In this document: positions 3,300 to 63,775 of the stretch, one piece after another
Layout of the letters: each line of letters starts with the position of its first letter
Position numbering within the stretch: the first letter of the stretch is position 1
IMG/VR virus record: IMGVR_UViG_3300043436_004687
Location: 1-64,000 of that record
DNA: 64,000 bases
Reading direction: 5' to 3' (one strand)
Made by a program: the position numbers and the translations under genes
Notes under the pieces: model-generated
Told to the model about the DNA's origin: nothing
The model's input: only the letters and a program-made list of their open reading frames with translations
The model's database searches: none

Positions 3300-4268
3300 T
3301 TATTTATTAATTTCTTTTTTAATTATTTCACTAAAATCATCATTTAATATTTCATTAATTTCATTAAGATCTATTTTTAAACATTCAGTATAACCATTAA
3401 AAATGGTTAAAGGAATATACTTATTATTTATAAATTTATTTAAGTAATATCTTTCCAAATAAATAGAATTATATAATGATGTTTTATATTCCAATAATAT
3501 TTTCACATTATATGGAAATTGTTTCCCAGAAAACCTATATTTAGTTTCTTCTTTTTTAGTAATACCTATTTTATAAAATAATTCATTATTATTACTACAT
3601 TCCACTAAATAAAATTTTGCATTTATTTTATTCCATAATAACTTATTTCTTTTGGCTAAAGTTATTGTATAACCACCAGTTAAATTTTCAAATGAACATT
3701 TAGGACACCCATTACTTTGTAAATGAAATCTTGGGGATATAGAGAATTCCCCATGTTTTTTACATGTAATATTTATTTTGCTATACCAATCAACAAAAGA
3801 ATCTGAATTATAAACATAAAGATTATTAAATTTCTTATTGGCTTTTAAACAAAAACTTTTAAAATCATTTTTATAATTTCTATTAATAACACTACATTTT
3901 TTACAACCTTGACCATTTATATGATTACGTACATTTTGATTGAAATCACCATGAATTTTACAAGTAATTATAACTTTATCAATCATTTTTTTATACTTAA
4001 ATTTATCATAAGTATAAAAGTTATTATGGATTTTATTAAAAATTTTTATAAAATATTCTTCTTTATTAATTGCTGACCCAATTCCTATTTTCGTATTATT
4101 TAACAATAGATTTGGTCTAACTTTACATAAACCAAATTTATTTTTAACTATTATTTTAATATTACTTTTTACATAATTACTTTCCACAGTAAATAATTTA
4201 TTTTTATAATCACCATTTTTTATTAATAACAATTTAATAAATTCCGAATGCGTAAGTTTTTTATTCAT
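3300..4268 (-). CDS. Putative free-standing homing endonuclease (DUF723-like CxxHG..CxxC repeats, C-terminal GIY-YIG/T5orf172-like domain)
   Basis: Repeats CKIHGDF..GCKKC and CKKHGEF..GCPKC; C-terminal FYLVEC..YKIGITK..RF; directly downstream of thyA. Confidence 0.7.
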   Translation of the reverse strand: MNKKLTHSEFIKLLLIKNGDYKNKLFTVESNYVKSNIKIIVKNKFGLCKVRPNLLLNNTKIGIGSAINKEEYFIKIFNKIHNNFYTYDKFKYKKMIDKVIITCKIHGDFNQNVRNHINGQGCKKCSVINRNYKNDFKSFCLKANKKFNNLYVYNSDSFVDWYSKINITCKKHGEFSISPRFHLQSNGCPKCSFENLTGGYTITLAKRNKLLWNKINAKFYLVECSNNNELFYKIGITKKEETKYRFSGKQFPYNVKILLEYKTSLYNSIYLERYYLNKFINNKYIPLTIFNGYTECLKIDLNEINEILNDDFSEIIKKEINK

Positions 4269-4273
4269 TAAAA

Positions 4274-5602
4274 TTAATTTGATAAGGGAGTTTTTATAGC
4301 AGAATGAGATTGATAATTTTCTAATTTAAAATCACTAGGGGTACAAGATTCTAATAACTCATCAATAGTTCCATCAAACTTTATATTATCATTAAATCTT
4401 AATGTTGGTAGAGGAAATGGTTGTCTATGAGTTCTTAGTTTAATAATTTGTTTATCTCTAATTTGACCCGCCTTTTTATAATCCTTATCTTTAAGTAATT
4501 TATTTTTTTCTTCTTCTAATTCTAAATCAATTCCTAAATGTTCATTTACTGCATCAATTTGATTATCATAAATATGACAATCACCTATATTACCAATCAA
4601 GTCTTCTGGAATCATATTACACATCTTACCTAAGATGCATAATAAGGCACCATAAGATGCTATATTGAAGGGAATGCCAAGTGGGAAATCTGCTGATCTT
4701 TGATTCCATAATAATGAGATTGTTCGTTTAGGGACATTAATATCCTTTTCATTCATTAAATCTTCAAAGAATAAATCACCATCAGATAATTTATAGCCAT
4801 TTTCACTAACGGTGTCATTATCATAATGAGGGTGATGGTATTTTTCAGAATTATCAAAATAAAATTCTCTTCTTTCTTCCAAACTTAACTCTCTTGTATA
4901 AATTTGAAAATCAGTATGACATGGTGGTAATATAGCATCATCAATTTCACTAGGATTCCAAGCTGTTACCTTAAGCCTCCTTGAATCTGGGTTTGCTTTA
5001 ATTTCGTTGATTAAATCTTGAATTTGATCTATTGGGTATTGTTCTATTATTTGAGAAACATCATTTTCATAATTATATTTCCTCCAACCTCTCCATTGAG
5101 CACCATATATCCTACCAAGATTTCCCCATTTATTAGAAAATTCATCATCAGTTTTTATTTTGTTGATAAATTCTTCTTCTGTATAAGGTCTAAATTCACC
5201 TTTAGAAATAGTTCCACTAACAGTTCCATAAATATCTATTGATTTTGAATCAAATCCTTTAATAGTTATTACTCCATTCCCTCTACATTGAAAATTGTCA
5301 AAAGATAAATCTTTGGTTTGATTAAAATACTTCTTATAAGCATCCCCCACCCAAATAAAACAATTGTTATCAACCAAATATTTTAAATCAGTTCTACCAC
5401 TTAAAAACCAATGTAATTCGGTCATAATAGTCTTGAAACCCATTTTTTTTGTGGTTAAAATTGGAAATTTACCATCTTTAAATTTATATCTAATAGTTCT
5501 ACCAAATAAACTTCTTACACCACCATTTCTAGTTTCTTTCTTATGACCATTATCTAAAATATCTCTTAATATTTCTAAATAATCTTTATCTAATTTATTC
5601 AT
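4274..5602 (-). CDS. thyA: Thymidylate synthase with insertions
   Basis: ETRNGG, FPILTTKK, WNP..LPPCH, QRSADFPLGIPFNIASY, GDCHIY motifs. Confidence 0.97.
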   Translation of the reverse strand: MNKLDKDYLEILRDILDNGHKKETRNGGVRSLFGRTIRYKFKDGKFPILTTKKMGFKTIMTELHWFLSGRTDLKYLVDNNCFIWVGDAYKKYFNQTKDLSFDNFQCRGNGVITIKGFDSKSIDIYGTVSGTISKGEFRPYTEEEFINKIKTDDEFSNKWGNLGRIYGAQWRGWRKYNYENDVSQIIEQYPIDQIQDLINEIKANPDSRRLKVTAWNPSEIDDAILPPCHTDFQIYTRELSLEERREFYFDNSEKYHHPHYDNDTVSENGYKLSDGDLFFEDLMNEKDINVPKRTISLLWNQRSADFPLGIPFNIASYGALLCILGKMCNMIPEDLIGNIGDCHIYDNQIDAVNEHLGIDLELEEEKNKLLKDKDYKKAGQIRDKQIIKLRTHRQPFPLPTLRFNDNIKFDGTIDELLESCTPSDFKLENYQSHSAIKTPLSN

Positions 5603-6721
5603 TTATTCTATTATATGAGGTAAAAACCTACTTGTATTATTTGTTATATATTCTGAACTTTCTCTAAAACCAATTCCAACTGATTCTTGACCAATTACCC
5701 AACTACCTATCAATACCTTATTACCATCAAATTCAGGCAACTTAAATAACTCTTGATATATAAAACCCTCTTCACCATATTCACCATCAGTAGACTCTAC
5801 CAACATATCATTTTCAAACAACTCAACATTAGCACCCTCTCTAGATAAAAAAGGTTTCTTAACATAATTTCTTAAATTACGTTTTTCAAAATAACATTCT
5901 AATAAGCTTTCGTGATTTGGAAACAATTCCCATAAAATTGGTAATATCGCTTTATTGCTTAATATCATTTTCCAAGAGGGTTCAATCCAAAGTGTATCTG
6001 TTTTGATTATATTTTTACCAAACTCTTCATTAACAATCCATTCCCAAGGATATAATTTAAATATATTTTTAATTGGGTTTTCATCTATATCGGTGAATTC
6101 ATTTCCATTCCAACCTATTTCATCGATATATATTAATTTGGTTTCAATTCCACCTTGAATAGCACAATCTCTCATATATTCAACTGTGGTTAAATCTTCT
6201 AATGATTCTCTAACACAAGTAAAATATAAAACACCATCATTAAGATATTCTTTTAAAACACCCCAATATTCAACAAGACGTTCATGCACAGAACTAAATT
6301 GATCTTTATTAGGGAATAAATCATTCATCCAATTCCATTGAACAACACCACATTCAAACAACGAAGTTGGTGTATCTGCATTGAATTCCAATAATTTTAA
6401 TTTACCATCCTTCATTACAAAATCAAATCTACCATAAATTGATGGTACATCGTTTTCCCAACTATCAATTATATGTTGATGCATATAATCTGGAATTCCA
6501 AAGCTACTTAATAAATTATTATCAATAACATGTTGAACGGCTTCTAAAGACATTGACCATAATTCATTGGTTGCTTTATATATTTGCTCACTTTCCTCTT
6601 TGGAAATTGAATAATAAGCACTCTCATCCCAATATGGTGTATCTGTAGAATGGAAACCAAAACCAATTTCTTCTAGTTTTGATTCCCAATCTTTTCTTTT
6701 ATTTATCTTTATTCTTTTCAT
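5603..6721 (-). CDS. Glutathionylspermidine synthase-like ATP-grasp ligase (YgiC/YjfC family)
   Basis: YGRFDF, LLEFNADTPTSLFE, KLYPWEW, LSNKAILPILW, SREGANV motifs. Confidence 0.92.
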   Translation of the reverse strand: MKRIKINKRKDWESKLEEIGFGFHSTDTPYWDESAYYSISKEESEQIYKATNELWSMSLEAVQHVIDNNLLSSFGIPDYMHQHIIDSWENDVPSIYGRFDFVMKDGKLKLLEFNADTPTSLFECGVVQWNWMNDLFPNKDQFSSVHERLVEYWGVLKEYLNDGVLYFTCVRESLEDLTTVEYMRDCAIQGGIETKLIYIDEIGWNGNEFTDIDENPIKNIFKLYPWEWIVNEEFGKNIIKTDTLWIEPSWKMILSNKAILPILWELFPNHESLLECYFEKRNLRNYVKKPFLSREGANVELFENDMLVESTDGEYGEEGFIYQELFKLPEFDGNKVLIGSWVIGQESVGIGFRESSEYITNNTSRFLPHIIE

Positions 6722-36723: not shown

Positions 36724-38571
36724 TTAAAAAGTCATTATATCGACCAATTCCAAATCTTTATATTTAGCATAAGAGTGTAAAGTACTAGGAACGTTAAACG
36801 AATTAGCCGCTTCAAAATCTAAACTAACTATTGTGTATTCATTATCATCAAATATTTTACACTCTTTTGGTTTAAAAGTTAGTGGATGTGAACAAACTTT
36901 TTCTGATTCTGAACAAATTTTATTAATAATTAACTTAATCTCTATTTCTGTCAACCCATGTTTTGTGTTGTAAAATTTTACAGGATTACCACCATAATCA
37001 ACTACATCTTTTAAACAATCAAACTTTATTTTCGTATCTTTAATAAAAACACCACCCTTTAGTTCTTTATACTTCTTATATAATTTTATGGCATCAAATT
37101 TTAGCGAAATTAAATCTTCTTTTTTACCACCATATTCAACAAATATAGATTTAGCATTTCTTAATTTATCAACAAAAACTTCATCATTTGATAGATATGT
37201 GTTGAAATAGGTAACATAATTATATTCGACATGTTTCTCACCCTCAAATACATATTTAACATCATCTATAACTAAATTAAATGGTTTAGCGGTCTTCTCA
37301 TATTCTTTTGATACTAAACCAATTTGAAGACAACTCATTCTCCATCCTTGTGTTGGTATTTCCAACCTTGTGTATTCACCATTCTTTTCAAAAAGTCGGA
37401 CAAGAGTATCAGGTTTTACATCATAAAACAAATTCATACTAACCTTTTCTCTATTATCACTATTTAAACATAAGTTAACAGCAATAATTGTGTCAGTATT
37501 TTCCTTTAAGTCAACATACGTATAAAAATTTTTATCTTTATATAAATCACTTAAATTTGTTTTCTTAGTACATGATATAACCAACATCGACAACACTAAA
37601 ATTAATAATTTTTTCATTTTATTTAATTATTTAATTTATTAAAACTTTTATTTGAAACATCATAGTATAACCATAACACACCAACCCCAATAACTGTTGT
37701 ACCATCAACATTAGAGTATTGTCTTTTAGCTATTGAAAATAAATAATAATTATCAGTAGTAACTGCAATATCAATTATTCGGTCAACACTAGTTTCTAAA
37801 ATGTTTTGAAAATACGTTGGTAAGTCGACACCAGATGTTGCGTTAGCTGAATAAGATTTTGCGTGTTCTTTAGCAGTTTTTTCAAATTTTTCTTGATTAG
37901 GATTTCCAACCAAGAAAAGCACTATCAATACACCTAAAGAAGTTAATATTTTTTTGTGAATAGTTTTCATTTTATTTAATTTTATATTTATTTTTTTCTA
38001 ATTGAACCCAATCAACTTTTGTTGATATTGATTTATTATATGCTGACATAAACTCAGCAGCATCTTTTTGTATTTTTAACTCTTTTGGTTTTTCACCAAC
38101 TACTTGTAACGTTACTTTCTTAGCGTTTTTCATTTCATTAATTATATAGGCATCAAAACTACCACCTATATGTTTCATATAAGCTTTAGTATATTTTGGA
38201 AAAGAAGCAGATTTATTTCCAGTTATTGCATTTGAAGCATCTTTAAACCCAGAACCACTTCCATCATGATATTTTTCATAATATAGTTCTTTACCATCAA
38301 TGGTAAGTCTATAGTCTTTACCTAAAGGTACATTAAATTCCAACTTAGAAAACCAAGTATTATCAATCATTTTAGAAATATTGTATGAAAACACATAATC
38401 TTTTGTTACTAACTCATATTCGATTTCAGTAGAATATTCAAATAATGTATCATAAGTAATTTCTAAATATTCTTTTTCAACTATTTTTTCTTTTTTAGTA
38501 TTGACATCATTTTTACACGAGTTTAAGGTTAAGATAAAAATTAATGTTAACCCAATTAAATAATTTTTCAT
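36724..38571 (-). CDS. Three exported/lipoprotein genes (36724-37617, 37623-37970, 37972-38571)
   Basis: N-terminal signals MKKLLILVLSMLVISC and MKNYLIGLTLIFILTLNSC. Confidence 0.65.
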
Positions 38572-47167: not shown

Positions 47168-47725
47168 TTATTTGTTTTTAAAATTATAATATTTTTCAGA
47201 ACCATCTGCTTTCGAATAAATTATCCTAGTAGCAGTTAATTTTATAGGATTATCTAAGTTTCTAATATAATCTTTACCTTTACCTCCCTTTACAAAAGCT
47301 ATGGTTGCATGGGCCTCATACTTAGGAAAATCACTCTTAAAAGGCAATTCTTTTAGTTTTTTATTCATATCCTTTAATGATTTATCGTTGATGTTGAATT
47401 TAACTACATCAATATCATCATTTTCAAATATATCTATTTTATCAAAGGTAATTTCTGGAGCTACAAATTCACAAACAATTTTTTTAAGTTCACTATCTTT
47501 AATACTAGGTAATAACCCATAAAGTAAAGTAATGTGAAAATTAGTTTCCCTACCTGATTTCCCATCAATATCAGAAACATCTTCATCCTTAATAGCATCT
47601 TGTAATTCTTTCATTTTATCTTTGGGTAAGTTAAAATCAAGCATCACACAACCATATTTATACTTTACCCCAGCTATTTCATTAAGCCTCATTCTTAACG
47701 ATTCTCTAATCAATTCCTTTCTCAT
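47168..47725 (-). CDS. 2H phosphoesterase (Acb1/gp57B-like)
   Basis: Two HxT motifs: HITLLYG and HATIAF. Confidence 0.75.
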   Translation of the reverse strand: MRKELIRESLRMRLNEIAGVKYKYGCVMLDFNLPKDKMKELQDAIKDEDVSDIDGKSGRETNFHITLLYGLLPSIKDSELKKIVCEFVAPEITFDKIDIFENDDIDVVKFNINDKSLKDMNKKLKELPFKSDFPKYEAHATIAFVKGGKGKDYIRNLDNPIKLTATRIIYSKADGSEKYYNFKNK

Positions 47726-48488
47726 TCTTACAATATATTAAATGTTCGTCATTATTATATAAATCAGTTAACAAATCACTTTGCCAATATTCTTTGGTGT
47801 CTACATCCATTATGGTTAACCTACCGTTAGAACCACCACCAGTATCTAAATTCCAAAGATTATAAAAATTAAGTGGTTGGTCTGTTGCAAACATAAGTGT
47901 GGGTGTATGACCTATAAAAATTTCTTTATAATTATTCAATCTTTTAGGTCTATACCTAATTAAATCCTCTATATTATCTTTATGCTGATGACTAACCGTA
48001 TAGGCTGCATCTAAAAGACTTCTATCCCAATATAATGTAGATAATTGGAACTCATCTCTGACTCCTTTAGGTGCCTTAAAACCACCATGTACGAATAATC
48101 TATTTTTATTATCAATGTAGTAATAATCTAACTGATCAATAAATTTTCTATGTTCATTTAAATCATATGTTGTTTTCCTATATGAATTTAATGTGGAATG
48201 CCCACCATTATTTAACCAATTAAAATTTACTACACCAAATACTAAGTATTCCCTTAACCATGCATCATGATTACCAAGTATAAAGATGGGTTTAAAATCA
48301 CATTCATTTTTTAACTTTATTAAATAATCTATAGTTTCAACAGCTGTTGCAAAACCATCTACATAATCCCCCAAGAAAATTAATTGATCTTCTTTTTTAT
48401 TAAAATTACATCTTTCCAAAACTTGTACTAATGCTAAATAACCATTATGTATATCTCCTATTACAAGCGTTCTTTTAATTTTAATCAT
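47706..48488 (-). CDS. Metallophosphoesterase (Ser/Thr phosphatase-like)
   Basis: IGDIH, FLGDYVD, LGNHD, FVHGG, IGHTP, LDTG. Confidence 0.9.
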   Translation of the reverse strand: MIKIKRTLVIGDIHNGYLALVQVLERCNFNKKEDQLIFLGDYVDGFATAVETIDYLIKLKNECDFKPIFILGNHDAWLREYLVFGVVNFNWLNNGGHSTLNSYRKTTYDLNEHRKFIDQLDYYYIDNKNRLFVHGGFKAPKGVRDEFQLSTLYWDRSLLDAAYTVSHQHKDNIEDLIRYRPKRLNNYKEIFIGHTPTLMFATDQPLNFYNLWNLDTGGGSNGRLTIMDVDTKEYWQSDLLTDLYNNDEHLIYCKNEKGID

Positions 48489-49169
48489 TTATTTAAATTT
48501 AAATTTATAACCATGTGTATGTTTTCTTTCTTCTTTACAAACCCTAGAAATCATTTTATAACTAATACCAGTTTCATTTGATGCTATTCTACCCGAAGAA
48601 AATTCTTTAATGAAATTATCATTTAAATCTAATTGAATAACTGGTTTTTCACCATTACAACTAATTAATTTATAAGGAAATTTTTCAAATTTTTCAAATA
48701 GCCATAAAAAACCACCAGCCGAATTAATTCCATTTTCATTACTTTTTTTACATGCTCTTAAAATATTACTATCTGGAATTTTAAATTCAATACCTGCATG
48801 ATTAGAATTTTCAAATGTTTTAATAAACTCACCATTTAAAGAATATTGATGGACTAACTTACCAACTTTTACTAAACCTAAACAATTATCCCAAGAATTT
48901 GTTAAATTATAACGTTTCATTAATTTTCTCATAAAAGTTTTTTCAATTTTTATTGATTCATCAATAGTACATACTTCATGATAAATTACATCTAATATTG
49001 GGTCACATTTTAAACTTCTAATCCAATTACATTTATGACTTTTACAATCACCTTTAGATTCTTTAATATGACATCTTAATCTATTTTTTGGGTTTAAAGT
49101 TCTACCAAAATATTTAATTTCATTTGTGTTTGGATTGCGTAATACATAAAAGTAACATTCTCGTTTCAT
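48489..49169 (-). CDS. GIY-YIG homing endonuclease with two NUMOD1 domains
   Basis: FYVLRNPNTNEIKYFGRT..RLRCH; VHQYSLNGEFIKTF; VIQLDLNDNFIKEF..HGYKFKF. Confidence 0.85.
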   Translation of the reverse strand: MKRECYFYVLRNPNTNEIKYFGRTLNPKNRLRCHIKESKGDCKSHKCNWIRSLKCDPILDVIYHEVCTIDESIKIEKTFMRKLMKRYNLTNSWDNCLGLVKVGKLVHQYSLNGEFIKTFENSNHAGIEFKIPDSNILRACKKSNENGINSAGGFLWLFEKFEKFPYKLISCNGEKPVIQLDLNDNFIKEFSSGRIASNETGISYKMISRVCKEERKHTHGYKFKFK

Positions 49170-49214
49170 CTTTTTATTTTAAGATAAACATGAAATATTA
49201 TTTTTAAATATTAT

Positions 49215-49262
49215 TTAATCAATATAATCACCTATAACAAGCGTTCTATTTGGGTTTAACAT
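49215..49262 (-). pseudogene. Orphan original N-terminus of the metallophosphoesterase (MLNPNRTLVIGDYID*)
   Basis: AGAACGCTTGTTATAGGTGAT versus AGAACGCTTGTAATAGGAGAT in the intact gene. Confidence 0.75.
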
Positions 49263-49796
49263 TTATTCTTTAATTTTAATATATTTTGATGGTACTTCTT
49301 CAGTTAACCAAACATTATTTTTAGACTTATAAAATTTATAACCATCTTTAAGCATTGATTTAGAATCAACTATCAATATAATTGGGTTACCTCTTCTGGA
49401 ACCTACATTGGTAGCAGTATTCAGATTATCACTTAAATGAACATGATTTCTATTCATTGGTTTTAACCCCTCTTTAAGAATTGGTTTTATGAATTTTTCA
49501 ACTGTTCCATGATACAATGTGATTGGTGGGATAGAAATTTTTAAATCAAGATCAACATTTATAGAATGGCCTTGATTTGCTCTAATTTTAGATTTATCTT
49601 CATTAAATGTAAATCGTTGTTTATCATTAGAAAAAACAATTTCATCTAATTCTTTTTTGGTAATATGATAATCTTTTAATGAACATTTTTCCAATAATTC
49701 ATCAACGCCAACCCAACCATTTTTATCTAATTTGATATTTATTGTTTCTGGTTTATGTCTTAAGATAAGACTAAGAAATTTACTATTATTTTTCAT
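49263..49796 (-). CDS. kptA: RNA 2'-phosphotransferase (Tpt1/KptA)
   Basis: LSLILRHKP, DKQRF, IRANQGHS, LYHGT, RNHVHLS. Confidence 0.95.
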   Translation of the reverse strand: MKNNSKFLSLILRHKPETINIKLDKNGWVGVDELLEKCSLKDYHITKKELDEIVFSNDKQRFTFNEDKSKIRANQGHSINVDLDLKISIPPITLYHGTVEKFIKPILKEGLKPMNRNHVHLSDNLNTATNVGSRRGNPIILIVDSKSMLKDGYKFYKSKNNVWLTEEVPSKYIKIKE

Positions 49797-50208
49797 TTTA
49801 TATATTTTAACACCAACGCATCATTTTATTACAATTAGGGCATTTTAAGTAATGATAAGTATCAGTACCCCCACCATAAGGTTCATTTTCCACTTTTTTG
49901 TCTACTTCATTCTCAAAATATTCTATTACTGCACCACAAGATGAATGAGTTCTTTGTTTAGCTTTTGATTTATCAATTTTTAAAACTTTTGCCATAATAC
50001 TTTGTTTTTAATTTATTGCAAATATAAGATTTTATATGCAAACTTCCAAATTATATTTTATTTATCTGAACCATAAATTAAAAGTTTATTGCATCACCTT
50101 AATGCTTTAGGGTTAATTACACACCAACCCCTTAGCCATTTAAGGGGTTGCTACCACTTCTTTATTTTTAATTTATTTATCATTTTATTTATTTTATTTG
50201 TTTTATTG

Positions 50209-50284
50209 TCGGGATAGCAGGGATCGAACCTGCGTGAATGTCCTACTCCCAAAGTAGGCGACTTACCAATTAGTCCATATCCCG
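50209..50284 (-). tRNA. tRNA-Pro(TGG)
   Basis: CGGGATA/TATCCCG acceptor; CCTAC-TTTGGGA-GTAGG; T-loop TTCGATC. Confidence 0.95.
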
Positions 50285-50292
50285 TGTTATTG

Positions 50293-50375
50293 TGGTGAGA
50301 TGAGGACTCGAACCTCTCCATTTTAATGACTAGATTTACAGTCTAGCTGCCATATCCAAATGACTTTATCGCACC
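50293..50375 (-). tRNA. tRNA-Tyr(GTA)
   Basis: CTAGA-CTGTAAA-TCTAG; long variable arm; T-loop TTCGAGT. Confidence 0.92.
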
Positions 50376-50388
50376 AATTTAATATAAT

Positions 50389-50428
50389 AAAAAAAACCCA
50401 GTTTAGATTTTTAATTCTAACTGGGTTT
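50389..50428 (-). terminator. Attenuator terminator A (upstream of tRNA-Tyr/Pro)
   Basis: AAACCCAGTTAGA/TCTAAACTGGGTTT stem plus U-run. Confidence 0.85.
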
Positions 50429-50465
50429 ATATTTTGTGGTTATAATTAACCAAAACTTAATATAT

Positions 50466-50558
50466 TTATGTGAAAATTTTTCCCATACCCAGTTTACCAT
50501 AAGGTCTATAACCTTTAGGTGTTTGCTGTTTTTGTTGATATGTGAAATTTGTATTCAT
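50466..50558 (-). CDS. Leader peptide A, MNTNFTYQQKQQTPKGYRPYGKLGMGKIFT
   Basis: 30 codons; 3 Tyr, 2 Pro, 4 Gln; contains antiterminator AAACTGGGT (50487-50495). Confidence 0.75.
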   Translation of the reverse strand: MNTNFTYQQKQQTPKGYRPYGKLGMGKIFT

Positions 50559-50640
50559 AGTTTTTATTTTTAATAAAATTTAGCGTGGTTTATTCAAAAC
50601 TCAAGGTTTATTGTATTTAACTCACAAATTTATAATCTCC

Positions 50641-50753
50641 TAATTTTATTGTTATTAATATATATATTGCAAATATAAGACAAAGTTTTATAATATACAA
50701 GCTTTTTTTAATTTATTTTTAAATTATTTTATAACTAATTGATAATCAAGTTA
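50641..50753 (-). repeat. Promoter block (TTG-N20-TATATTTG) repeated at 61201-61312
   Basis: About 110 nt near-identical to 61201-61312; both blocks precede leader-attenuator-tRNA units. Confidence 0.85.
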
Positions 50754-51126
50754 ATTAATTTTTCTTTTCCTTAAAATTTTTTCAGTAATTTTACCACCAT
50801 TTAAAATTTTCATCTTGGTGATTAATAAATTATTCAGATGTTGATATAAGGTGTCTTCTAATTCTAATTTTTCTTTTAATGAAATTAAACGATTTTTAGA
50901 TTCTAAATAGAGTAAATTAGATATGTGTTTTTTAAATTCACTATCTTCAACATTTTCCAATTTTTTAATAAGATTTGAATATGAAAAAATTAATTTAGAG
51001 ATTGGTTTAATTAAACTTTTATTTTCATTTAATTTATCCACAATATAAGGAAGCATAGAAAGAGTATTTCTATCTCCAAAGGTACCAGTTTCAATTAATT
51101 TAATTTTCATCTTAATATTATATTAG

Positions 51127-51196
51127 TATAGATTAAGGGATTCGAACCCTTGGTTATCAAAGTATTGGTTCAGCAAAACCACTCTGCCAAACCCAT
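51127..51196 (-). pseudogene. tRNA-Ser(GCT)-like sequence lacking the 3' half of the D-arm
   Basis: ATGGGTT/AATCTAT acceptor, TGGCAGAGTGG, TGGTT-TTGCTG-AACCA, AAGGG-TTCGAAT-CCCTT. Confidence 0.6.
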
Positions 51197-59122: not shown

Positions 59123-59685
59123 ACTTTATAAGTTGAGTTTGTTTTTTTAATTTTATTTATTTCTTCAGTTTCATCTAAAATATATTCCTCAAATTCATTA
59201 TGATTTAGTAAAAGTTTTTCATTTTCTTCCAACTCAAACATTTTTATTAAATTTTCATAATGGCGTGAATTATCTATAGGTTCGACCAAATCTAAATGAA
59301 TTTTAATACTTCCAGTAAACAAATCATCCAGTTGTTGACGAAGTTGCTTATCAGCCTCTATCTTATAGAGTTTAACTGCTTCTTGATACTCATCCTTATG
59401 TTTTTGATAATTCTCTTTTATTTTTGAAATTATATTTTCTTTGCTAATTGTAGTTTTCATAATTAATCATTTATTTAGTGCAAAGATAGTAATTAAAAAT
59501 TAATTGAACAAATTTATTTTTCTAAAAGTTCAATTATTTTTTTCTTGAAGTCTAAAATAACTTCATTGGCACTTTCCTCATCAAAAGTCGAAGTTATTAA
59601 TGAAATTAATTCTGAATCATCAAATATAAACTGTAGTTCTAGTAATTTTTTTTCTAATGTCATTTTAAATTAATTTATTTATTTG

Positions 59686-59757
59686 TACTCCCGAAGGGAA
59701 TCGAACCCTCCTTCCCAGGCTGAAAACCTGATGTCCTAACCGATAGACGACAGGAGC
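59686..59757 (-). tRNA. tRNA-Glu(TTC)
   Basis: GCTCCTG/CGGGAGT; TCAGG-TTTTCAG-CCTGG; T-loop TTCGATT. Confidence 0.95.
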
Positions 59758-59766
59758 ATAAAAATT

Positions 59767-59880
59767 AATCAAAAAGTCTTCGTCTCTCCTAGCTGGCCCA
59801 CTTGAGGATAAATCCTCGTGCCCGACTCGAACGGGAATGCTAGCGACTCAATCCAGCTTGCCATTTTCATGGTTTTGATT
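59767..59880 (-). ncRNA. GC-rich structured RNA with a T-loop, between tRNA-Asp and tRNA-Glu
   Basis: AATCAAAA/TTTTTGATT closure, AGCTGG/CCAGCT, CCCG-TTCGAGT-CGGG, GAGGA-TTTA-TCCTC. Confidence 0.6.
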
Positions 59881-59886
59881 AATTTA

Positions 59887-59961
59887 TGGCGGTCCTAGAG
59901 GGAATCGAACCCTCATCATGCCCGTGACAGGGGCGTATCCTAGCCATTGAACGATAGGACC
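59887..59961 (-). tRNA. tRNA-Asp(GTC), CCA encoded
   Basis: GGTCCTA/TAGGACC+G+CCA; GCCC-CTGTCAC-GGGC. Confidence 0.96.
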
Positions 59962-59963
59962 TT

Positions 59964-60797
59964 TTATTTTAACCATTTTCTTATAGCATTATCACTAACA
60001 CCATATTTCCTACCAGTTGCAGAATAACCTAATTGATCAACTTCTTTTAATAAAATCTCTTTACTAGGTCTATCTTTAACTTTTCTTAATTTAGTTGAAC
60101 TTTCGATTTGTTTATTAGTCCTCGCATTATTAATTAATTTTTCAGAATTTAATAATATTTTATCTTCATTTAATTTTTCAATCTTAACATATTTTATTTT
60201 TAATCTATTATGACCAATACAATGAGTTTTTGTTTGACTATGACAATTTGGGCATAAATATCTTAAATTTTCCAACCTATTATCACTATTATCACCATTA
60301 ATATGATCAATTTCTAATTTAATTTTATTTCCACACCAAATATCTATTATGCTACAATTTATATTACTACATTTATAAGATAATAATTTATCTTGAATAA
60401 TTCTTTTCTTTACTACATTTTTACTAACACTAGAATTTAAAATAAATATTTCATTATTAGTTAATATTCTACTGTATTTATTACCTCTATTATATTTATA
60501 TTTTAATATTGAAACATCAATTCCATATAACAAACAATATTTATCTAATGTTTGAAAATTCCCAGATTTTAATGTTATATTTAAATTTCTTAATACATCC
60601 GATTTACATTCTGATTTAGATATTGCATTAAGTAAATTTTCTTTAGTCCAATTATGTGTTCTTTTATAACCACTAGTATTTAAACCAAATTTTGTTAAAT
60701 TATATCTTATTTTACCCTCACTAACCTCAAAAAAGTTACTTAATTTTTTAATTGTATAACCCTCTTTAATTTTTTCTTTTAAAATTTCTATATCCAT
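59964..60797 (-). CDS. HNH homing endonuclease within a tRNA operon
   Basis: LEIDHINGDNSDNRLENLRYLCPNCHSQT; HTH-like ends. Confidence 0.9.
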   Translation of the reverse strand: MDIEILKEKIKEGYTIKKLSNFFEVSEGKIRYNLTKFGLNTSGYKRTHNWTKENLLNAISKSECKSDVLRNLNITLKSGNFQTLDKYCLLYGIDVSILKYKYNRGNKYSRILTNNEIFILNSSVSKNVVKKRIIQDKLLSYKCSNINCSIIDIWCGNKIKLEIDHINGDNSDNRLENLRYLCPNCHSQTKTHCIGHNRLKIKYVKIEKLNEDKILLNSEKLINNARTNKQIESSTKLRKVKDRPSKEILLKEVDQLGYSATGRKYGVSDNAIRKWLK

Positions 60798-60889
60798 ATC
60801 TTTTATTATAAATATAGAAACTTTAAAAAAAGTAAACTAAGTAAAGATAATAATTTAAATAACCCTATTATTACATAATTTACACTAAG

Positions 60890-60962
60890 TGAGTTCTATG
60901 GTATTCGAAACTATTCCCAATGCTCTTCAGGCATTTGTGCGCACCAGCTACACCAAAAACTC
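60890..60962 (-). tRNA. tRNA-Phe(GAA)
   Basis: GAGTTTT/AGAACTC; AATGC-CTGAAGA-GCATT. Confidence 0.9.
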
Positions 60963-60968
60963 TTTTTG

Positions 60969-61042
60969 TGGAGGATAACAAGATTCGAACTGTTGACCCC
61001 TTGCGTGCAAGGCAAGTGCTCTACCAACTAAGCTAATCCCCC
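60969..61042 (-). tRNA. tRNA-Ala(TGC)
   Basis: G3-U70 identity pair; CTTGC-CTTGCAC-GCAAG. Confidence 0.95.
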
Positions 61043-61051
61043 ATTTTATTC

Positions 61052-61088
61052 AAAAAAAAAAACTCAACCTAATTAAAAGTTGAGTTTT
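61052..61088 (-). terminator. Attenuator terminator B
   Basis: AAAACTCAACTT/AGGTTGAGTTTT stem plus long U-run. Confidence 0.88.
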
Positions 61089-61110: not shown

Positions 61111-61200
61111 TTAACTAAATTCCATACTCAACTTACCAAAGCCATAATCTTCAGCTATTGCTTCAAAAGCAAAATCAAATATGTTATTAAGTGTTTTCAT
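61111..61200 (-). CDS. Leader peptide B, MKTLNNIFDFAFEAIAEDYGFGKLSMEFS
   Basis: 29 codons; F/D/A/E are 11 of codons 8-21; antiterminator AAGTTGAGT at 61126-61134. Confidence 0.8.
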   Translation of the reverse strand: MKTLNNIFDFAFEAIAEDYGFGKLSMEFS

Positions 61201-61309
61201 AGTTTTTATTGTTATTAATATATAGTGCAAATATAAGATAAAGTTTTATAATATGCAAGTTTTTTTTAATTTATTTTTTAAATTATTTTATAACTAATTG
61301 ATAACCAAG

Positions 61310-61578: not shown

Positions 61579-61650
61579 TGGTAGTGAAGGTGGGATTCGA
61601 ACCCACAAACTCCCTGTTTCTAAGACAGAATACTCTACCGCTTCTTAAAT
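61579..61650 (-). pseudogene. 3' part of a tRNA (TAG anticodon, short variable loop, CCA) whose 5' acceptor strand lies at 63081-63087
   Basis: GCGGTAGAGT, TCTGT-CTTAGAA-ACAGG, GTGGG-TTCGAAT-CCCAC, CTTCACT-A-CCA; complementary GGTGAAG only beyond the tnpB element. Confidence 0.7.
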
Positions 61651-61751: not shown

Positions 61752-62894
61752 TTATTTTAATCCTAATAACCTAATTCCTTCATTCTTTATATTGATAGCT
61801 GCATTCAAATCCCTATTAATACTCAAATTACATTCACTACAATTATATAACCTATGTTTCAATTCTAAATCTATTTTTTTATTCCCACAACAACTACATA
61901 ATTTACTACTAGCAAACCATCTATCAATATCAACTAAATCCCTACCATACCATTCAGATTTATATTTAAGTATATTCTTAAATCTATTTAAACTCAATTC
62001 TTGTATAGATTTAGCTAATTTATGATTCTTCATCATACCACTTACATTTAAATTTTCAATTACTATAACTTGGTTATCATTTAGTAATTTATTTGCTACT
62101 TCATGTAAATAATTTTCTTTTTTATTAGTTAATTTTTCATTAAATTTAGCTAATTTTATTCTAGCTTTTTCTTTATTTTTACTACCATTTTCTTTTTTAC
62201 TTAAATTCTTATGTAATTTAGCTAACTTGTTTTTGTTATTTCTAATTATTTTTAAGTTATCATATTCTACACCATTTGAATCAACTATAAATGTTTTTAT
62301 TCCTAAATCAATTCCTACTATATTATTTTTAGGCGTATCTAATTCTAATAATTCATTTGAATCAACTAATATACTTAAAAAATATTTGTTTGATTTAGTT
62401 TTAGATAGTGTAGCTGATTTAATTCCTTCTTTATATTTGTTAAGATAATTAACATACTTATCTGACGTTCTAAATTTAATATCTTTTAATTGACTTGTAA
62501 GTGTTAACTTATTTGATAAATAATTATTTTTCTTAGATATTGCTTCTAATGGAAATCTACAACTTTGTATATTATCATGTTTTGATTTAAAATTAGGAAA
62601 CCCACTTCCATTTATAAAAAATCGTTTATAGCTATCTAACAAATTAATTACAGATTGTTTCAATACTTTGGTATTATGATTAGTTAACCAAATATAATCT
62701 GAATTTTTAGTTAGAGTTTGATGAAAATAGTTACCCAATTCTTTCAACCCCAAATTGCTTTTATCTTTTAAATAAGATTCTTTTTTAAGGGATAAGCAAT
62801 TATTAAATACGAATCGATAGCTACCAAACAAATCATTTAAATATGATTGTTGTGTAGTATTAGGGTATATACGTATTTTAATTGATTTTAACAT
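61752..62894 (-). mobile_element. tnpB: Solo IS200/IS605-family TnpB (HTH, RuvC, Zn finger) with downstream omegaRNA-like region
   Basis: KIRIYPN, GIDLGIK, VIENLNV, CSCCG..CSEC, RDLNAAINI. Confidence 0.95.
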
Positions 62895-63095
62895 AAAATT
62901 TTATGGGTATATTAATACCCTGTTATTATAAATATAAGAATAAATTTAAAAAGTTCAATATTATTATGTTAAATTTAGTTAAAATTATACATTATGGTTT
63001 TAAATCTATTTAATTGTTTATGTTTGTATAAGATTGTTTAGATAATTAGTTTCTGTTACTAACCCTTCGTTTTAATAGCACTTCACCATATTTTG

Positions 63096-63179
63096 TAACC
63101 CTGACAAGATTCGAACTTGCAACCCATTGAGGGACAGCATTCTAAGTGCTGCGTGTATAGCCATTTCCACCACAGAGCC
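63096..63179 (-). tRNA. tRNA-Leu(TAG)
   Basis: CAGCA-CTTAGAA-TGCTG; long variable arm; GCAAG-TTCGAAT-CTTGT. Confidence 0.92.
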
Positions 63180-63185
63180 TTCCTT

Positions 63186-63485
63186 TTATTTTAACTTAAT
63201 AAAATCTTCTTTTTCAATTGCTTTAGTAATCCATCTTATGAGTTCACTTCCTTTAATTTCACTATGAAACTCAGTTAAACCCAAATCCTCACTTAAAACA
63301 AGTGTATTGAAAGTTTCGGTTTGAAATGAATTGGAAACTTTTTTATGTTCAACTGTTGATATAGGAAATTGGAATGTTCCGTTAGATAAATCTATATTAT
63401 AAAATAACTTTCCATTATAATAATGAGAAAATTTAGCTAATGTTTTTAATTTGTATAATTCTTTTTTTATTTCTGTTGCATTCAT
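63186..63485 (-). CDS. Hypothetical protein inside the tRNA operon
   Basis: 99-aa ORF from the track, A-rich start. Confidence 0.65.
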   Translation of the reverse strand: MNATEIKKELYKLKTLAKFSHYYNGKLFYNIDLSNGTFQFPISTVEHKKVSNSFQTETFNTLVLSEDLGLTEFHSEIKGSELIRWITKAIEKEDFIKLK

Positions 63486-63515
63486 TTTTTTTTATGTATT
63501 TAATTTATTAATTAG

Positions 63516-63601
63516 AACTGGAAGTAGGATTCGAACCTACGGTGCACTTTTCAGTAATTAGGGTTGCAATCTAATGAATTCGACCACTTTTCTATTCCAG
63601 C
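63516..63601 (-). tRNA. tRNA-Cys(GCA) with an unusually long variable arm
   Basis: GCTGGAA/TTCCAGT, U73, loop TTGCAAC, 16-nt variable region, GTAGG-TTCGAAT-CCTAC. Confidence 0.85.
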
Positions 63602-63611
63602 ATTTGTTTAA

Positions 63612-63648
63612 AATAAAAAATCCGATTAAGTTTTAATTAATCGGATTT
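63612..63648 (-). terminator. Attenuator terminator C
   Basis: AAATCCGATTAA/TTAATCGGATTT stem plus U-run. Confidence 0.85.
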
Positions 63649-63670: not shown

Positions 63671-63775
63671 TTAATGAAAATAATTTATTTCAAATTCCGA
63701 TTCTTCCAACCCTAATAGGATCAGTGAAGTTAAACATAAGTTAAGCGCCAATTTGAATTTATTTACTACTTTCAT
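63671..63775 (-). CDS. Leader peptide C, MKVVNKFKLALNLCLTSLILLGLEESEFEINYFH
   Basis: 34 codons; 8 Leu (five different codons) and 1 Cys in codons 9-23; antiterminator AATCGGA at 63696-63702. Confidence 0.75.
   Translation of the reverse strand: MKVVNKFKLALNLCLTSLILLGLEESEFEINYFH

Follow-up and report, generated by a model that had tools for sequence, protein, structure and literature searches.

The locus at 50.2 kb of the viral record IMGVR_UViG_3300043436_004687, at which a short open reading frame (ORF) and a transcription terminator stand directly before two transfer RNA (tRNA) genes, raises the question of why and when a phage expresses the tRNAs it encodes. The DNA analysed here, referred to as the window, comprises the first 64 kb of this 339,635-bp record. 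It has a GC content of about 25%, nearly all of its genes are located on the minus strand, and phage-type genes for a thymidylate synthase, a polymerase, a helicase and homing endonucleases are present; no close cultured relative of the window phage was found. The locus, designated unit A, is part of a tRNA region extending from 50.2 to 63.6 kb, in which three attenuator-like units (A, B and C) share one plan, consisting of a leader ORF, a terminator and tRNA genes. Judged from its sequence, unit A is likely a ribosome-mediated (leader-peptide) transcription attenuator gating a phage tRNA operon, and it probably forms one family with similar switches of other Flavobacteriia phages. The phage would probably make these tRNAs only when decoding slows. 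Direct support exists for the parts of the unit and their order, for three pairing segments that covary, and for the correspondence between leader and tRNA array.

Architecture of unit A and its relatives

All parts of unit A are located on the minus strand. The promoter (50670..50702) consists of a TTG element at -33 (50700..50698), a spacer of 20 nt and the -7 box TATATTTG (50677..50670). The motif TATATTTGCA occurs in nine copies in the window, compared to 0.56 expected, each time on the minus (coding) strand, and a TTG was identified about 20 nt upstream of all nine. An extended box, TATATTTGCA-N-TATATATTAATAACAA, is common to unit A, unit B and relatives. This TTG/TAnnTTTG promoter, which we take to be of the Bacteroidota sigma-A type, points to a flavobacterial host. 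It is followed by a 5' untranslated leader of about 110 nt (50559..50669) with an A-rich stretch ahead of the ATG, and by the predicted leader ORF (50466..50558), which comprises 30 codons and a stop codon (MNTNFTYQQKQQTPKGYRPYGKLGMGKIFT) and starts about 110 nt downstream of the -7 box. Three Tyr codons (Y7, Y17, Y20) and two Pro codons (P14, P19) are contained in this ORF.

Codons 22-25 of the leader contain the putative antiterminator strand, segment 2 (AAACTGGGTA, 50486..50495), which is followed by a conserved GTATG at 50488..50484. Here, AAACTGGGT (50495..50487, codons K22-L23-G24) is an exact copy of the terminator 3' arm (50404..50396) and is therefore able to pair with the 5' arm. This 9-mer is present in three copies in the window (0.64 expected), two of them 91 nt apart within unit A. 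Further upstream, the core ACATAT (50538..50543, codons T6-Y7) is a candidate anti-antiterminator strand and was designated segment 1. A spacer of 37 nt separates the ORF from the terminator hairpin, which is formed by segment 3 (the 5' arm, AAACCCAGTTAGA, 50416..50428) and segment 4 (the 3' arm, TCTAAACTGGGTTT, 50389..50407, with a run of eight T at 50396..50389). The terminator (50428..50389) has a folding energy of -14.7 kcal/mol (z = -4.2), and 0 of 200 shuffled sequences folded equally well. The gene for tRNA-Tyr (anticodon GTA, 50292..50375; Rfam score 26.8 bits, under the gathering score) begins 13 nt past the T-run, and is followed by the gene for tRNA-Pro (anticodon TGG, 50208..50284; 59.4 bits). 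The gap between terminator and tRNA leaves no space for a promoter, and no other promoter is visible for tRNA-Tyr.

A first-pass annotation of the window had placed the leader, the AAACTGGGT segment, the terminator and the two tRNA genes at these same positions, with a right boundary at 50677 that coincides with the end of the -7 box. The architecture proposed there, with a leader ORF, an antiterminator segment, a terminator and tRNA genes, was recovered in the three units of the window and 21 further metagenomic units, and cultured flavobacterial phages contribute at least four more; the three pairing segments change together.

The relatives, designated by L numbers, were gathered from viral and metagenome collections by a KptA-based search and two DNA-pattern searches. 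In the phage group of the window, 24 distinct units were identified, three from the window and 21 from metagenomic phages, which fall into four leader families. Family A (window unit A, L036/L080 and L058) has the leader TYTKQYQPKGGK, followed by tRNAs for Pro, Lys, Thr, Tyr, Gln, Glu, Thr and Gly. Within this family, the leader of unit A is homologous to MRNYTTYTKQYQPKGGKSQGQLSIRCSDITEF of L036/L080 and to MTTVTTYTKQYQPKGGKPTVQLDMRYNKDTDW of L058. In family B, NIFENDFFAAEADF stands before Asp, Asp, Glu, Phe, Phe and additional tRNAs, and in family C LVTLLCLCLLVLV before Cys, Cys, Val, Leu, Leu, Pro, Leu and additional ones. Family D, of which no member was seen in the window, has the leader ISIIHI.NS.NWRRNS ahead of His, Trp, Ser, Ile, Leu, Met, Asn, Asn, Ser and Arg; the leader ISIIHIMSSINWRRNS stands before His, Trp, Ser, Ile, Leu, Met, Asn, Ser and Arg. 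All 24 units, as well as the cultured phages Gundel_1 and Calle_1, have a leader ORF of 20-35 codons, and in every unit it begins with an ATG in an A-rich context. A search for the promoter pattern in 185,579 cellular genomes gave five chance matches and no unit. Two other handles on relatives were rejected. In viral contigs, the motif TWTGGTAARYTGRGTATGGRA, from the segment 2 region common to units A and B, was found, apart from the contig that contains the window, only in an opposite-strand coding gene of four unrelated contigs lacking tRNAs, which was attributed to chance, and TnpB is mobile, its 34 loci not being syntenic.

For cultured phages, blastn and tblastn searches with the leaders of the jumbo phages gave no homologues, and the examples were located via tRNA similarity and inspection. 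The Tenacibaculum phage Gundel_1 (Pachyviridae) contains one unannotated unit with the leader MKTKLYSYSCFSSWFKNRAG and a segment 2, AGCAGGAT (-13.8 kcal/mol), which overlaps the stop codon. Downstream, a hairpin with a run of eight T is followed by Thr-like, Trp-like, Phe, Ser, Cys-like and Ser tRNAs. The Cellulophaga phage Calle_1 (Pervagoviridae) contains three units, one for each tRNA block. Here, KTIMNIATDIRTKGVK precedes tRNAs for Lys, Ile, Gly, Met, Asp, Thr, Val and Arg; TYNNFSWYSNCSFSSYN, which is 100% conserved in phi38:1 and phi40:1, precedes Ser, Ser, Asn, Trp and Phe; and LLHQEPLEQLRLP precedes Pro, Gln, His, one untyped tRNA, Leu and Arg. The three T-runs are located at about 3998 and about 5619 of L094 and directly ahead of tRNA-Pro. 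The leaders of Gundel_1 and Calle_1 carry no annotation. The same scan on the tRNA region of the T5-like coliphage TrudiGerster revealed no unit.

Several further features were observed in these phages. In Gundel_1 (L093, about 5897-5915, minus strand) and in unit 2 of Calle_1 (L094, about 5430-5447), the leader ATG is located 4-5 nt past the -7 box, and these leader mRNAs may be leaderless or nearly so. At the leader locus of phi38:1, the only annotated coding sequence is gp067 (KC821614.1, 36714-36845; L095, 3471-3602), on the strand opposite to the conserved leader ORF (36744-36830, plus strand), and it is probably a mis-called ORF. The Thr-like and Trp-like tRNA genes of Gundel_1 score under the Rfam threshold, and its tRNA listed as 'Undet' has a GCA anticodon in a mispaired anticodon stem. 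Atypical tRNAs directly past terminators were identified at L048 7410-7504 and at L093 5630-5773 and 5379-5452, one of them with a long variable arm and untyped by ARAGORN. Suppressor-type tRNAs are encoded in related phages, with the anticodon TTA (reading UAA) in L066, in the array after the B unit, and in L069, and with the anticodon CTA (reading UAG) in L085; these genomes may in part use recoded stop codons. In L061, L065, L071, L085, L086 and L087, a conserved ORF of about 55 amino acids (..VRKLGxEKL..FD..DKY..GYxGxLKFxKEKGK..FVELE) is located between the attenuator and the first tRNA-His, in the first 200 nt past the D-type terminator, and would be co-regulated with the tRNAs. Finally, L036 contains a sigma-70-family ORF (3537-4400) inside the family A tRNA array, between tRNA-Thr(GGT) and tRNA-Gly, with its own TATCTTTG box upstream.

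Leader codons and the tRNA arrays

The correspondence between leader and array was determined by counting, from codon 2 up to the pairing segment, the codons for amino acids that are served by a tRNA gene of the downstream array. Matching codons were 15 of 18 for L080 (binomial P = 1e-4), 17 of 20 for L048 (8e-5), 12 of 17 for the family C unit of L066 (L066-C; 3e-6), 11 of 20 for window unit B (1e-3) and 9 of 23 for window unit C (3e-4). The values range from 1e-3 to 3e-6 for the best-sampled unit of each family and from 0.03 to 3e-6 over all eight units tested. The match is largely kept at the level of codon and anticodon (14/18, 15/20 and 16/18). The match to the arrays of other families is far lower than that to the own array, with the exception of the Leu-rich family C leaders, which reach about 0.5 on the Leu/Ile/Ser-containing D array. 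Among eight independent pairs of leader and array, each leader has its own array as the best one, and only one of 40,320 reassignments, the true assignment, reaches the observed score. The first-pass annotation had described the leader of unit A as rich in Tyr and Pro. The cognate-codon rule behind this description is supported, with eight of eight independent leaders matching their own array best, and the enrichment in unit A taken alone is marginal; it is the sister units in the window and the units of related phages that argue for more than chance.

In unit B, residues 8-18 of the leader, FDFAFEAIAED, match the downstream tRNAs for Ala, Phe, Asp and Glu. The unit is composed of a promoter (TTG, spacer and TATATTTGCA; 61226..61260, minus strand), a leader ORF (MKTLNNIFDFAFEAIAEDYGFGKLSMEFS, 61111..61200, minus strand) with segment 2, TAAGTTGAGTA, at 61135..61125, and a terminator (AAACTCAACTT/AGGTTGAGTTT, 61052..61087, minus strand; T11, -12.8 kcal/mol, z = -5.1) which ends 9 nt before tRNA-Ala. 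Its array (59685..61042, minus strand) contains tRNA-Ala (61042..60968), tRNA-Phe (60962..60889), an inserted HNH endonuclease ORF (60797..59964), tRNA-Asp (59961..59887) and tRNA-Glu (59757..59685). Units A and B have about 110 nt of promoter-region sequence in common and are therefore regarded as paralogues. For unit C, the leader ORF (MKVVNKFKLALNLCLTSLILLGLEESEFEINYFH, 63671..63775, minus strand) with segment 2, GAATCGGAA, at 63703..63695 is followed by a terminator (AAATCCGATTAA/TTAATCGGATTT, 63615..63648, minus strand; T6, -11.9 kcal/mol, z = -3.7) ending 8 nt before tRNA-Cys, and by an array (63095..63601, minus strand) of tRNA-Cys (63601..63515), an ORF of 99 amino acids (63485..63186) and tRNA-Leu(TAG) (63179..63095). 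The homologues of this leader in L066 and L067 (MKTLVTLLCLCLLVLVTNASS...) precede Cys-Cys-Val-Leu arrays.

Members of family D differ in how the residues of the sensing zone are ordered, in their C-terminal tails and in the position of the stop codon; WRRNS, encoded by TGG AGA CGT AAT TCT, is invariant in its nucleotides. This argues for selection on codon content and not on the peptide. It bears on the possibility that the leaders are independent small-protein genes with functional peptides, in which case the terminators would be ordinary, the tRNAs would be expressed by constitutive leak-through and the stem repeat would be a by-product. The family C leaders are hydrophobic and resemble signal peptides (MKTLVTLLCLCLLVLVTNA|SS), and one leader, gp066 of phi38:1, has been annotated as a hypothetical protein. 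However, a hydrophobic leader is expected for an array of Cys, Val and Leu tRNAs, it is codon content that is conserved while tails, lengths and residue order are not, and neither the three-way covariation described below nor the correspondence of leader and array is explained, so that this explanation is very improbable.

Another claim of the first-pass annotation was that a tRNA-Gln had been lost from unit A, since the leader contains a run of Gln codons with no cognate tRNA gene downstream. The comparison to relatives supports this, as the homologous leader of L036/L080 precedes a Pro-Lys-Thr-Tyr-Gln-Glu-Thr-Gly array. The two leaders share the AAACCCAGTT stem and the promoter box, and a KptA 66% identical is encoded a few kb downstream. 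Of the 20 sensing codons of window leader A, 16 fit the array set of L036/L080, and 11 of the 20 (Gln, Lys, Thr and Gly) fit this array and have no tRNA gene in unit A. It is thus supported by the sequence comparison that the array of unit A has shrunk to Tyr and Pro, with codons for Gln, Lys, Thr and Gly left in the leader from an ancestral array that was larger. The Tyr and Pro tRNAs of the window are about 60% identical to their L080 counterparts; orthology was not shown, because the identity is about 60% for any pairing compared. In view of this low identity and of the GIY-YIG, HNH and TnpB elements in the region, turnover or replacement of the array describes the change better than a single deletion. 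At the positions of GGKSQG or GGKPTV in relatives, the window leader has GYRPYG, by which two Tyr codons and one Pro codon are added, and this change may represent a re-tuning of the leader.

The shrunken array could also mean that the switch family is real and unit A is a decaying relic, which after the loss of most of its array no longer regulates usefully. In favour of this are the reduction to Tyr and Pro genes, with 11 of 20 sensing codons fitting the larger array of the relative and having no cognate gene in unit A, the roughly 80 nt inserted into the 5' untranslated leader, as seen in the upstream comparison to the paralogous unit B, from which they are absent, and the mobile elements (GIY-YIG, HNH, TnpB) scattered throughout the tRNA region. 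However, the promoter boxes, start codon, reading frame and terminator of unit A are all intact, its 2:3 pairing (-13.0 kcal/mol, P = 0.002) ranks near the top in the set of 24, GYRPYG has brought in two Tyr codons and one Pro codon, and tRNA-Tyr would depend on the only promoter visible for it. A relic is accordingly considered unlikely, and a functional attenuator with a changed array is preferred.

Pairing segments and the proposed mechanism

In 24 of 24 units, the best partner of the terminator 5' arm was found within the unit's own ORF, at codons 18-27 and just 5' of the conserved GTATG. The energy of this 2:3 duplex is between -7.6 and -16.6 kcal/mol, and in 23 of the 24 units the terminator is the more stable helix. 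For unit A, the best duplex of segment 2 and the 5' arm comprises 8 bp, with the energy and the P value against shuffles given above, and the truncated transcript folds into the 2:3 helix. In the window, each unit repeats its own terminator 3' arm near the 3' end of the ORF (AAACTGGGT in A, AAGTTGAGT in B and AATCGGA in C), and the three terminators, with -11.9 to -14.7 kcal/mol, z values of -3.7 to -5.1 and 6-11 T, are followed by the first tRNA after 8-13 nt.

The stem sequences vary among units and include ACTGGGT, GTTGAGT, ATCGGA, TGTCAGG, GGTCAAG, GATGAGT, CATCGAGCT, GTCGAG, GCGGGT and others. When pair types were counted by a script in the structural register, registers 3-10 of the stem showed 3-6 pair types in the terminator and in the alternative helix alike; MAFFT alignments (A1, A2) for column-wise covariation were dropped, since register shifts between subfamilies misalign the stems. 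The pairs of own arms have a mean energy of -10.9 kcal/mol, compared to -4.7 kcal/mol across families, and the observed mean was reached in 0 of 20,000 permutations of the arms among all 24 units, and likewise in 0 of 20,000 among the ten units with distinct stems. Thus, the ORF segment co-varies with both arms of the terminator, which is the signature of two mutually exclusive helices.

From these elements, the following mechanism is proposed. Host RNA polymerase would start at the TTG/TAnnTTTG promoter and transcribe the leader ORF of 20-35 codons, the first 15-20 codons of which would be taken from those read by the tRNAs encoded downstream. With fast decoding, the ribosome would be located over or past segment 2 (codons about 18-27), the 5' arm would pair with the 3' arm, and transcription would stop at the T-run, a few nucleotides before the first tRNA. 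When a cognate charged tRNA is scarce, the ribosome would stall upstream, and segment 2 would be left bare and pair with the newly made 5' arm, so that no terminator would form and the whole array would be transcribed. The outcome would be a demand-driven negative feedback on the phage tRNA supply, multivalent in that one array could respond to as many as about eight amino acids. It is inferred from the sequence that the ORF is translated, that ribosomes stall on it and that control runs in this direction, as is a role of a helix between segments 1 and 2 as opposed to simple ribosome masking.

In a ribosome-mask model, in which 15 nt upstream and 14 nt downstream of the A site are covered, the 2:3 helix forms when the A site is no further along than about codon 17, and it is abolished over codons 19-29. 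The first-pass annotation had cautioned that P19 and Y20 lie so close to the antiterminator that stalling there might mask it and that the polarity of control may differ by codon. The geometry behind this caution is correct, since an A site on codons 19-29 hides segment 2; the effect is probably small. A reversal of polarity would probably matter little, because a starved ribosome would stall first at Y7 or P14.

For the 1:2 helix, the ACATAT hexamer was identified at nucleotides 16-26 of the ORF in families A, B and D. Its occurrence in all three reading frames points to a constraint at the RNA level. It pairs with GTATG in minimum-energy folds, and an ACAUAU:GUAUGU helix is predicted in these three families.

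Several observations weigh against the attenuator interpretation or narrow it. Units of one family share ancestry, so that unit counts overstate independence, a point which is addressed by the family-level and cross-lineage tests. In unit A itself, Tyr and Pro account for 5 of the 20 codons upstream of the pairing segment, which is marginal (binomial P = 0.013). Both Pro codons are CCT and would be unread by the anticodon UGG under strict wobble, by which the three TAT codons are left as the only codons of the unit read by downstream tRNAs; 3-5 of 20 are therefore cognate. For some units, the shuffle P value of the 2:3 duplex taken singly is modest (0.05-0.27). The free truncated RNA already favours the 2:3 helix at equilibrium, so that termination under efficient translation would rely on kinetics or ribosome masking; for the terminator to win, ribosome masking or kinetic trapping may be enough. 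The ACAUAU:GUAUGU pairing is invariant and shows no covariation, RNAalifold finds invariant pairs only, and the energies of the 1:2 duplex are no better than those of shuffles in most units; the 1:2 (anti-antiterminator) helix is therefore weakly supported. Finally, the stop codon is located 3-13 codons past segment 2 at a distance which is not fixed, unlike in the trp leader, and it overlaps segment 2 in Gundel_1 only.

The weak support for the 1:2 helix also speaks for a generic translation-coupling sensor, in which leader and terminator report the global translation capacity and the codon content has no regulatory role. Such a sensor would equally respond to the arrival of a ribosome with segment 2 located in the ORF, a variable stop position and a 2:3 helix favoured in free RNA. 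However, it leaves unexplained why eight independent leaders are enriched for the amino acids, and largely the codons, of their own arrays and not of others, and why the three codon sets of Calle_1 mirror its three tRNA blocks. A generic sensor is therefore quite unlikely, and codon-specific attenuation is retained as the interpretation.

Beyond unit A, there is a reasonable, somewhat better than even, case that Flavobacteriia phages, from 70-kb podoviruses to jumbo phages of more than 300 kb, carry unrecognised multivalent codon-sensing attenuators, in which a shortage of any of up to eight cognate tRNAs turns on the whole array, the tRNA genes are autoregulated via their own codons, and the leaders keep a fossil record of lost arrays. 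If this is true, the leader represents a "table of contents" of its tRNA array, and the triggering shortage could stem from a mismatch in codon usage, from host shut-off or from host defences which cleave or deplete tRNAs.

Genomic surroundings and comparison to known systems

The downstream neighbours of unit A (47706-49796, minus strand) code for a KptA/Tpt1 RNA 2'-phosphotransferase (49263-49796), a GIY-YIG/NUMOD homing endonuclease (48489-49169) and a calcineurin-like phosphoesterase (47706-48488), which looks like an RNA-repair neighbourhood beside the tRNA genes. After tRNA-Pro, a GC-rich hairpin without a T-run, AACCCCTTAaatggcTAAGGGGTT (50128-50150, minus strand), is located ahead of the next promoter (50017-50026), and could serve in processing or stability or mark where the unit A operon ends. 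Upstream of unit A and of the ORF at 50751-51110, a degenerate tRNA-like sequence was identified at 51127-51196 (minus strand; Rfam 34.7 bits), which has a mispaired acceptor stem, is detected by ARAGORN at relaxed settings only and is possibly a tRNA pseudogene. Also within the tRNA region, a TnpB/IS605-type ORF (61752-62894, minus strand; OrfB_IS605, Cas12f1-like TNB, HTH) is present, and just downstream of it a truncated tRNA-like piece (61582-61639, minus strand; Rfam 31.4 bits, Leu(tag)-like with relaxed ARAGORN), which may be the remnant of a tRNA-Leu gene or a portion of the guide-RNA region of the TnpB element. The spacer of 129 nt between tRNA-Asp and tRNA-Glu of unit B (59758-59886, minus strand) is unusually GC-rich and looks structured (..GGCAAGCTGGATTGAGTCGCTAGCATTCCCGTTCGAGTCGGGCACGAGG..); it was typed by neither ARAGORN nor Rfam.

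No description of a leader-peptide control of tRNA genes was found in the literature, which was partly covered by full-text search, and the papers on the cultured phages do not mention such units. As far as was found, this would be the first case of tRNA genes under ribosome-mediated attenuation, with their supply set by the decoding of cognate codons. It offers a candidate answer to the question of why and when phages express tRNAs, namely on demand, and bears on codon-usage mismatch and on host defences targeting tRNAs. For annotation, the rule follows that the contents of a phage tRNA block can be read from the short ORF ahead of it; at least one such ORF has been annotated on the wrong strand, and others are unannotated. 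Mismatches between leader and array, as in unit A, disclose gene loss or turnover. The units are, in addition, small natural devices that would sense decoding capacity through several inputs, and they could be employed as reporters. Cultured pairs of phage and host exist, with Gundel_1 and Tenacibaculum sp. AHE14PA, and with Calle_1 or phi38:1 and Cellulophaga, and an RNA-seq time series of phi38:1 infection has been published (PMC5335546).

Multivalent attenuators are known from enterobacteria, like thr with Thr and Ile codons or ilvGMEDA with Leu, Val and Ile codons, besides trp, his, leu and pheA. Like the thr and ilv attenuators, the phage units have a short promoter-proximal ORF with regulatory codons, a terminator before the structural genes, a segment pairing with the 5' arm and several amino acids per leader. 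Unlike the enterobacterial systems, they control tRNA genes and not biosynthetic enzymes, sample up to about eight amino acids, mostly one to three times each and not in runs, have a stop codon which is mostly well past segment 2, and show no clear support for a 1:2 helix; they are also phage-borne, have Bacteroidota promoters and belong to no Rfam leader family at threshold. On the window, Rfam gave tRNA matches only and no leader family, both at the gathering threshold and at E <= 1. The best sub-threshold leader scores, 27.9 bits for Phe_leader and 23.1 bits for Thr_leader (gathering score 55 each), were obtained on the Gundel_1 unit.

In the phylum Bacteroidota, the Bacteroid-trp leader motif of Rfam is cellular and located before trp biosynthesis genes, and would show that leader-peptide attenuation takes place in a phylum in which initiation is mostly not led by Shine-Dalgarno sequences. 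It differs from the phage units in sequence and target, and no match to it was obtained on the window. The tRNA clusters of T4-like and T5-like coliphages are similar to the arrays described here in being interspersed with small ORFs and homing endonucleases. Expression of these coliphage tRNAs has been described as driven by promoters and processing, and the scan of T5-like TrudiGerster revealed no combination of small ORF, terminator and tRNA with the internal stem repeat that marks the units described here.

No ORF is involved in T-box elements, which recognise uncharged tRNA through RNA-RNA contact. Both T-box and protein-dependent attenuators centre on mutually exclusive terminator and antiterminator helices, as the phage units do, and the leader RNA could in principle act in the same manner, as an RNA-only or factor-dependent switch that binds uncharged tRNA or a protein and for which the ORF is irrelevant. 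Such a switch is extremely improbable: the leaders reach the threshold of no Rfam family, a conserved specifier or T-box sequence was not detected in them, T-box RF00230 gave no match on the window at E <= 1, and the ORF is kept with its ATG and A-rich context in every unit, with codon content as the conserved property. The phage units thus show no T-box signature, and leader-peptide attenuation remains the preferred interpretation.

Also similar are the systems by which the supply of cognate charged tRNA controls aminoacyl-tRNA synthetases, like pheST with its Phe-rich leader peptide. In the phage units, as in control of the pheST/thrS type and in T-box control, genes of the translation apparatus would be governed by the supply of cognate tRNA via the choice between terminator and antiterminator. 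To our knowledge, all leader-peptide attenuators described so far control genes for amino acid biosynthesis, amino acid transport or aminoacyl-tRNA synthetases, and none controls tRNA genes. The genes downstream of the phage leaders are tRNA genes and are outside this set of targets. Unlike in the control of aminoacyl-tRNA synthetases, the product of the phage unit is the tRNA itself, by which its supply would be directly autoregulated.

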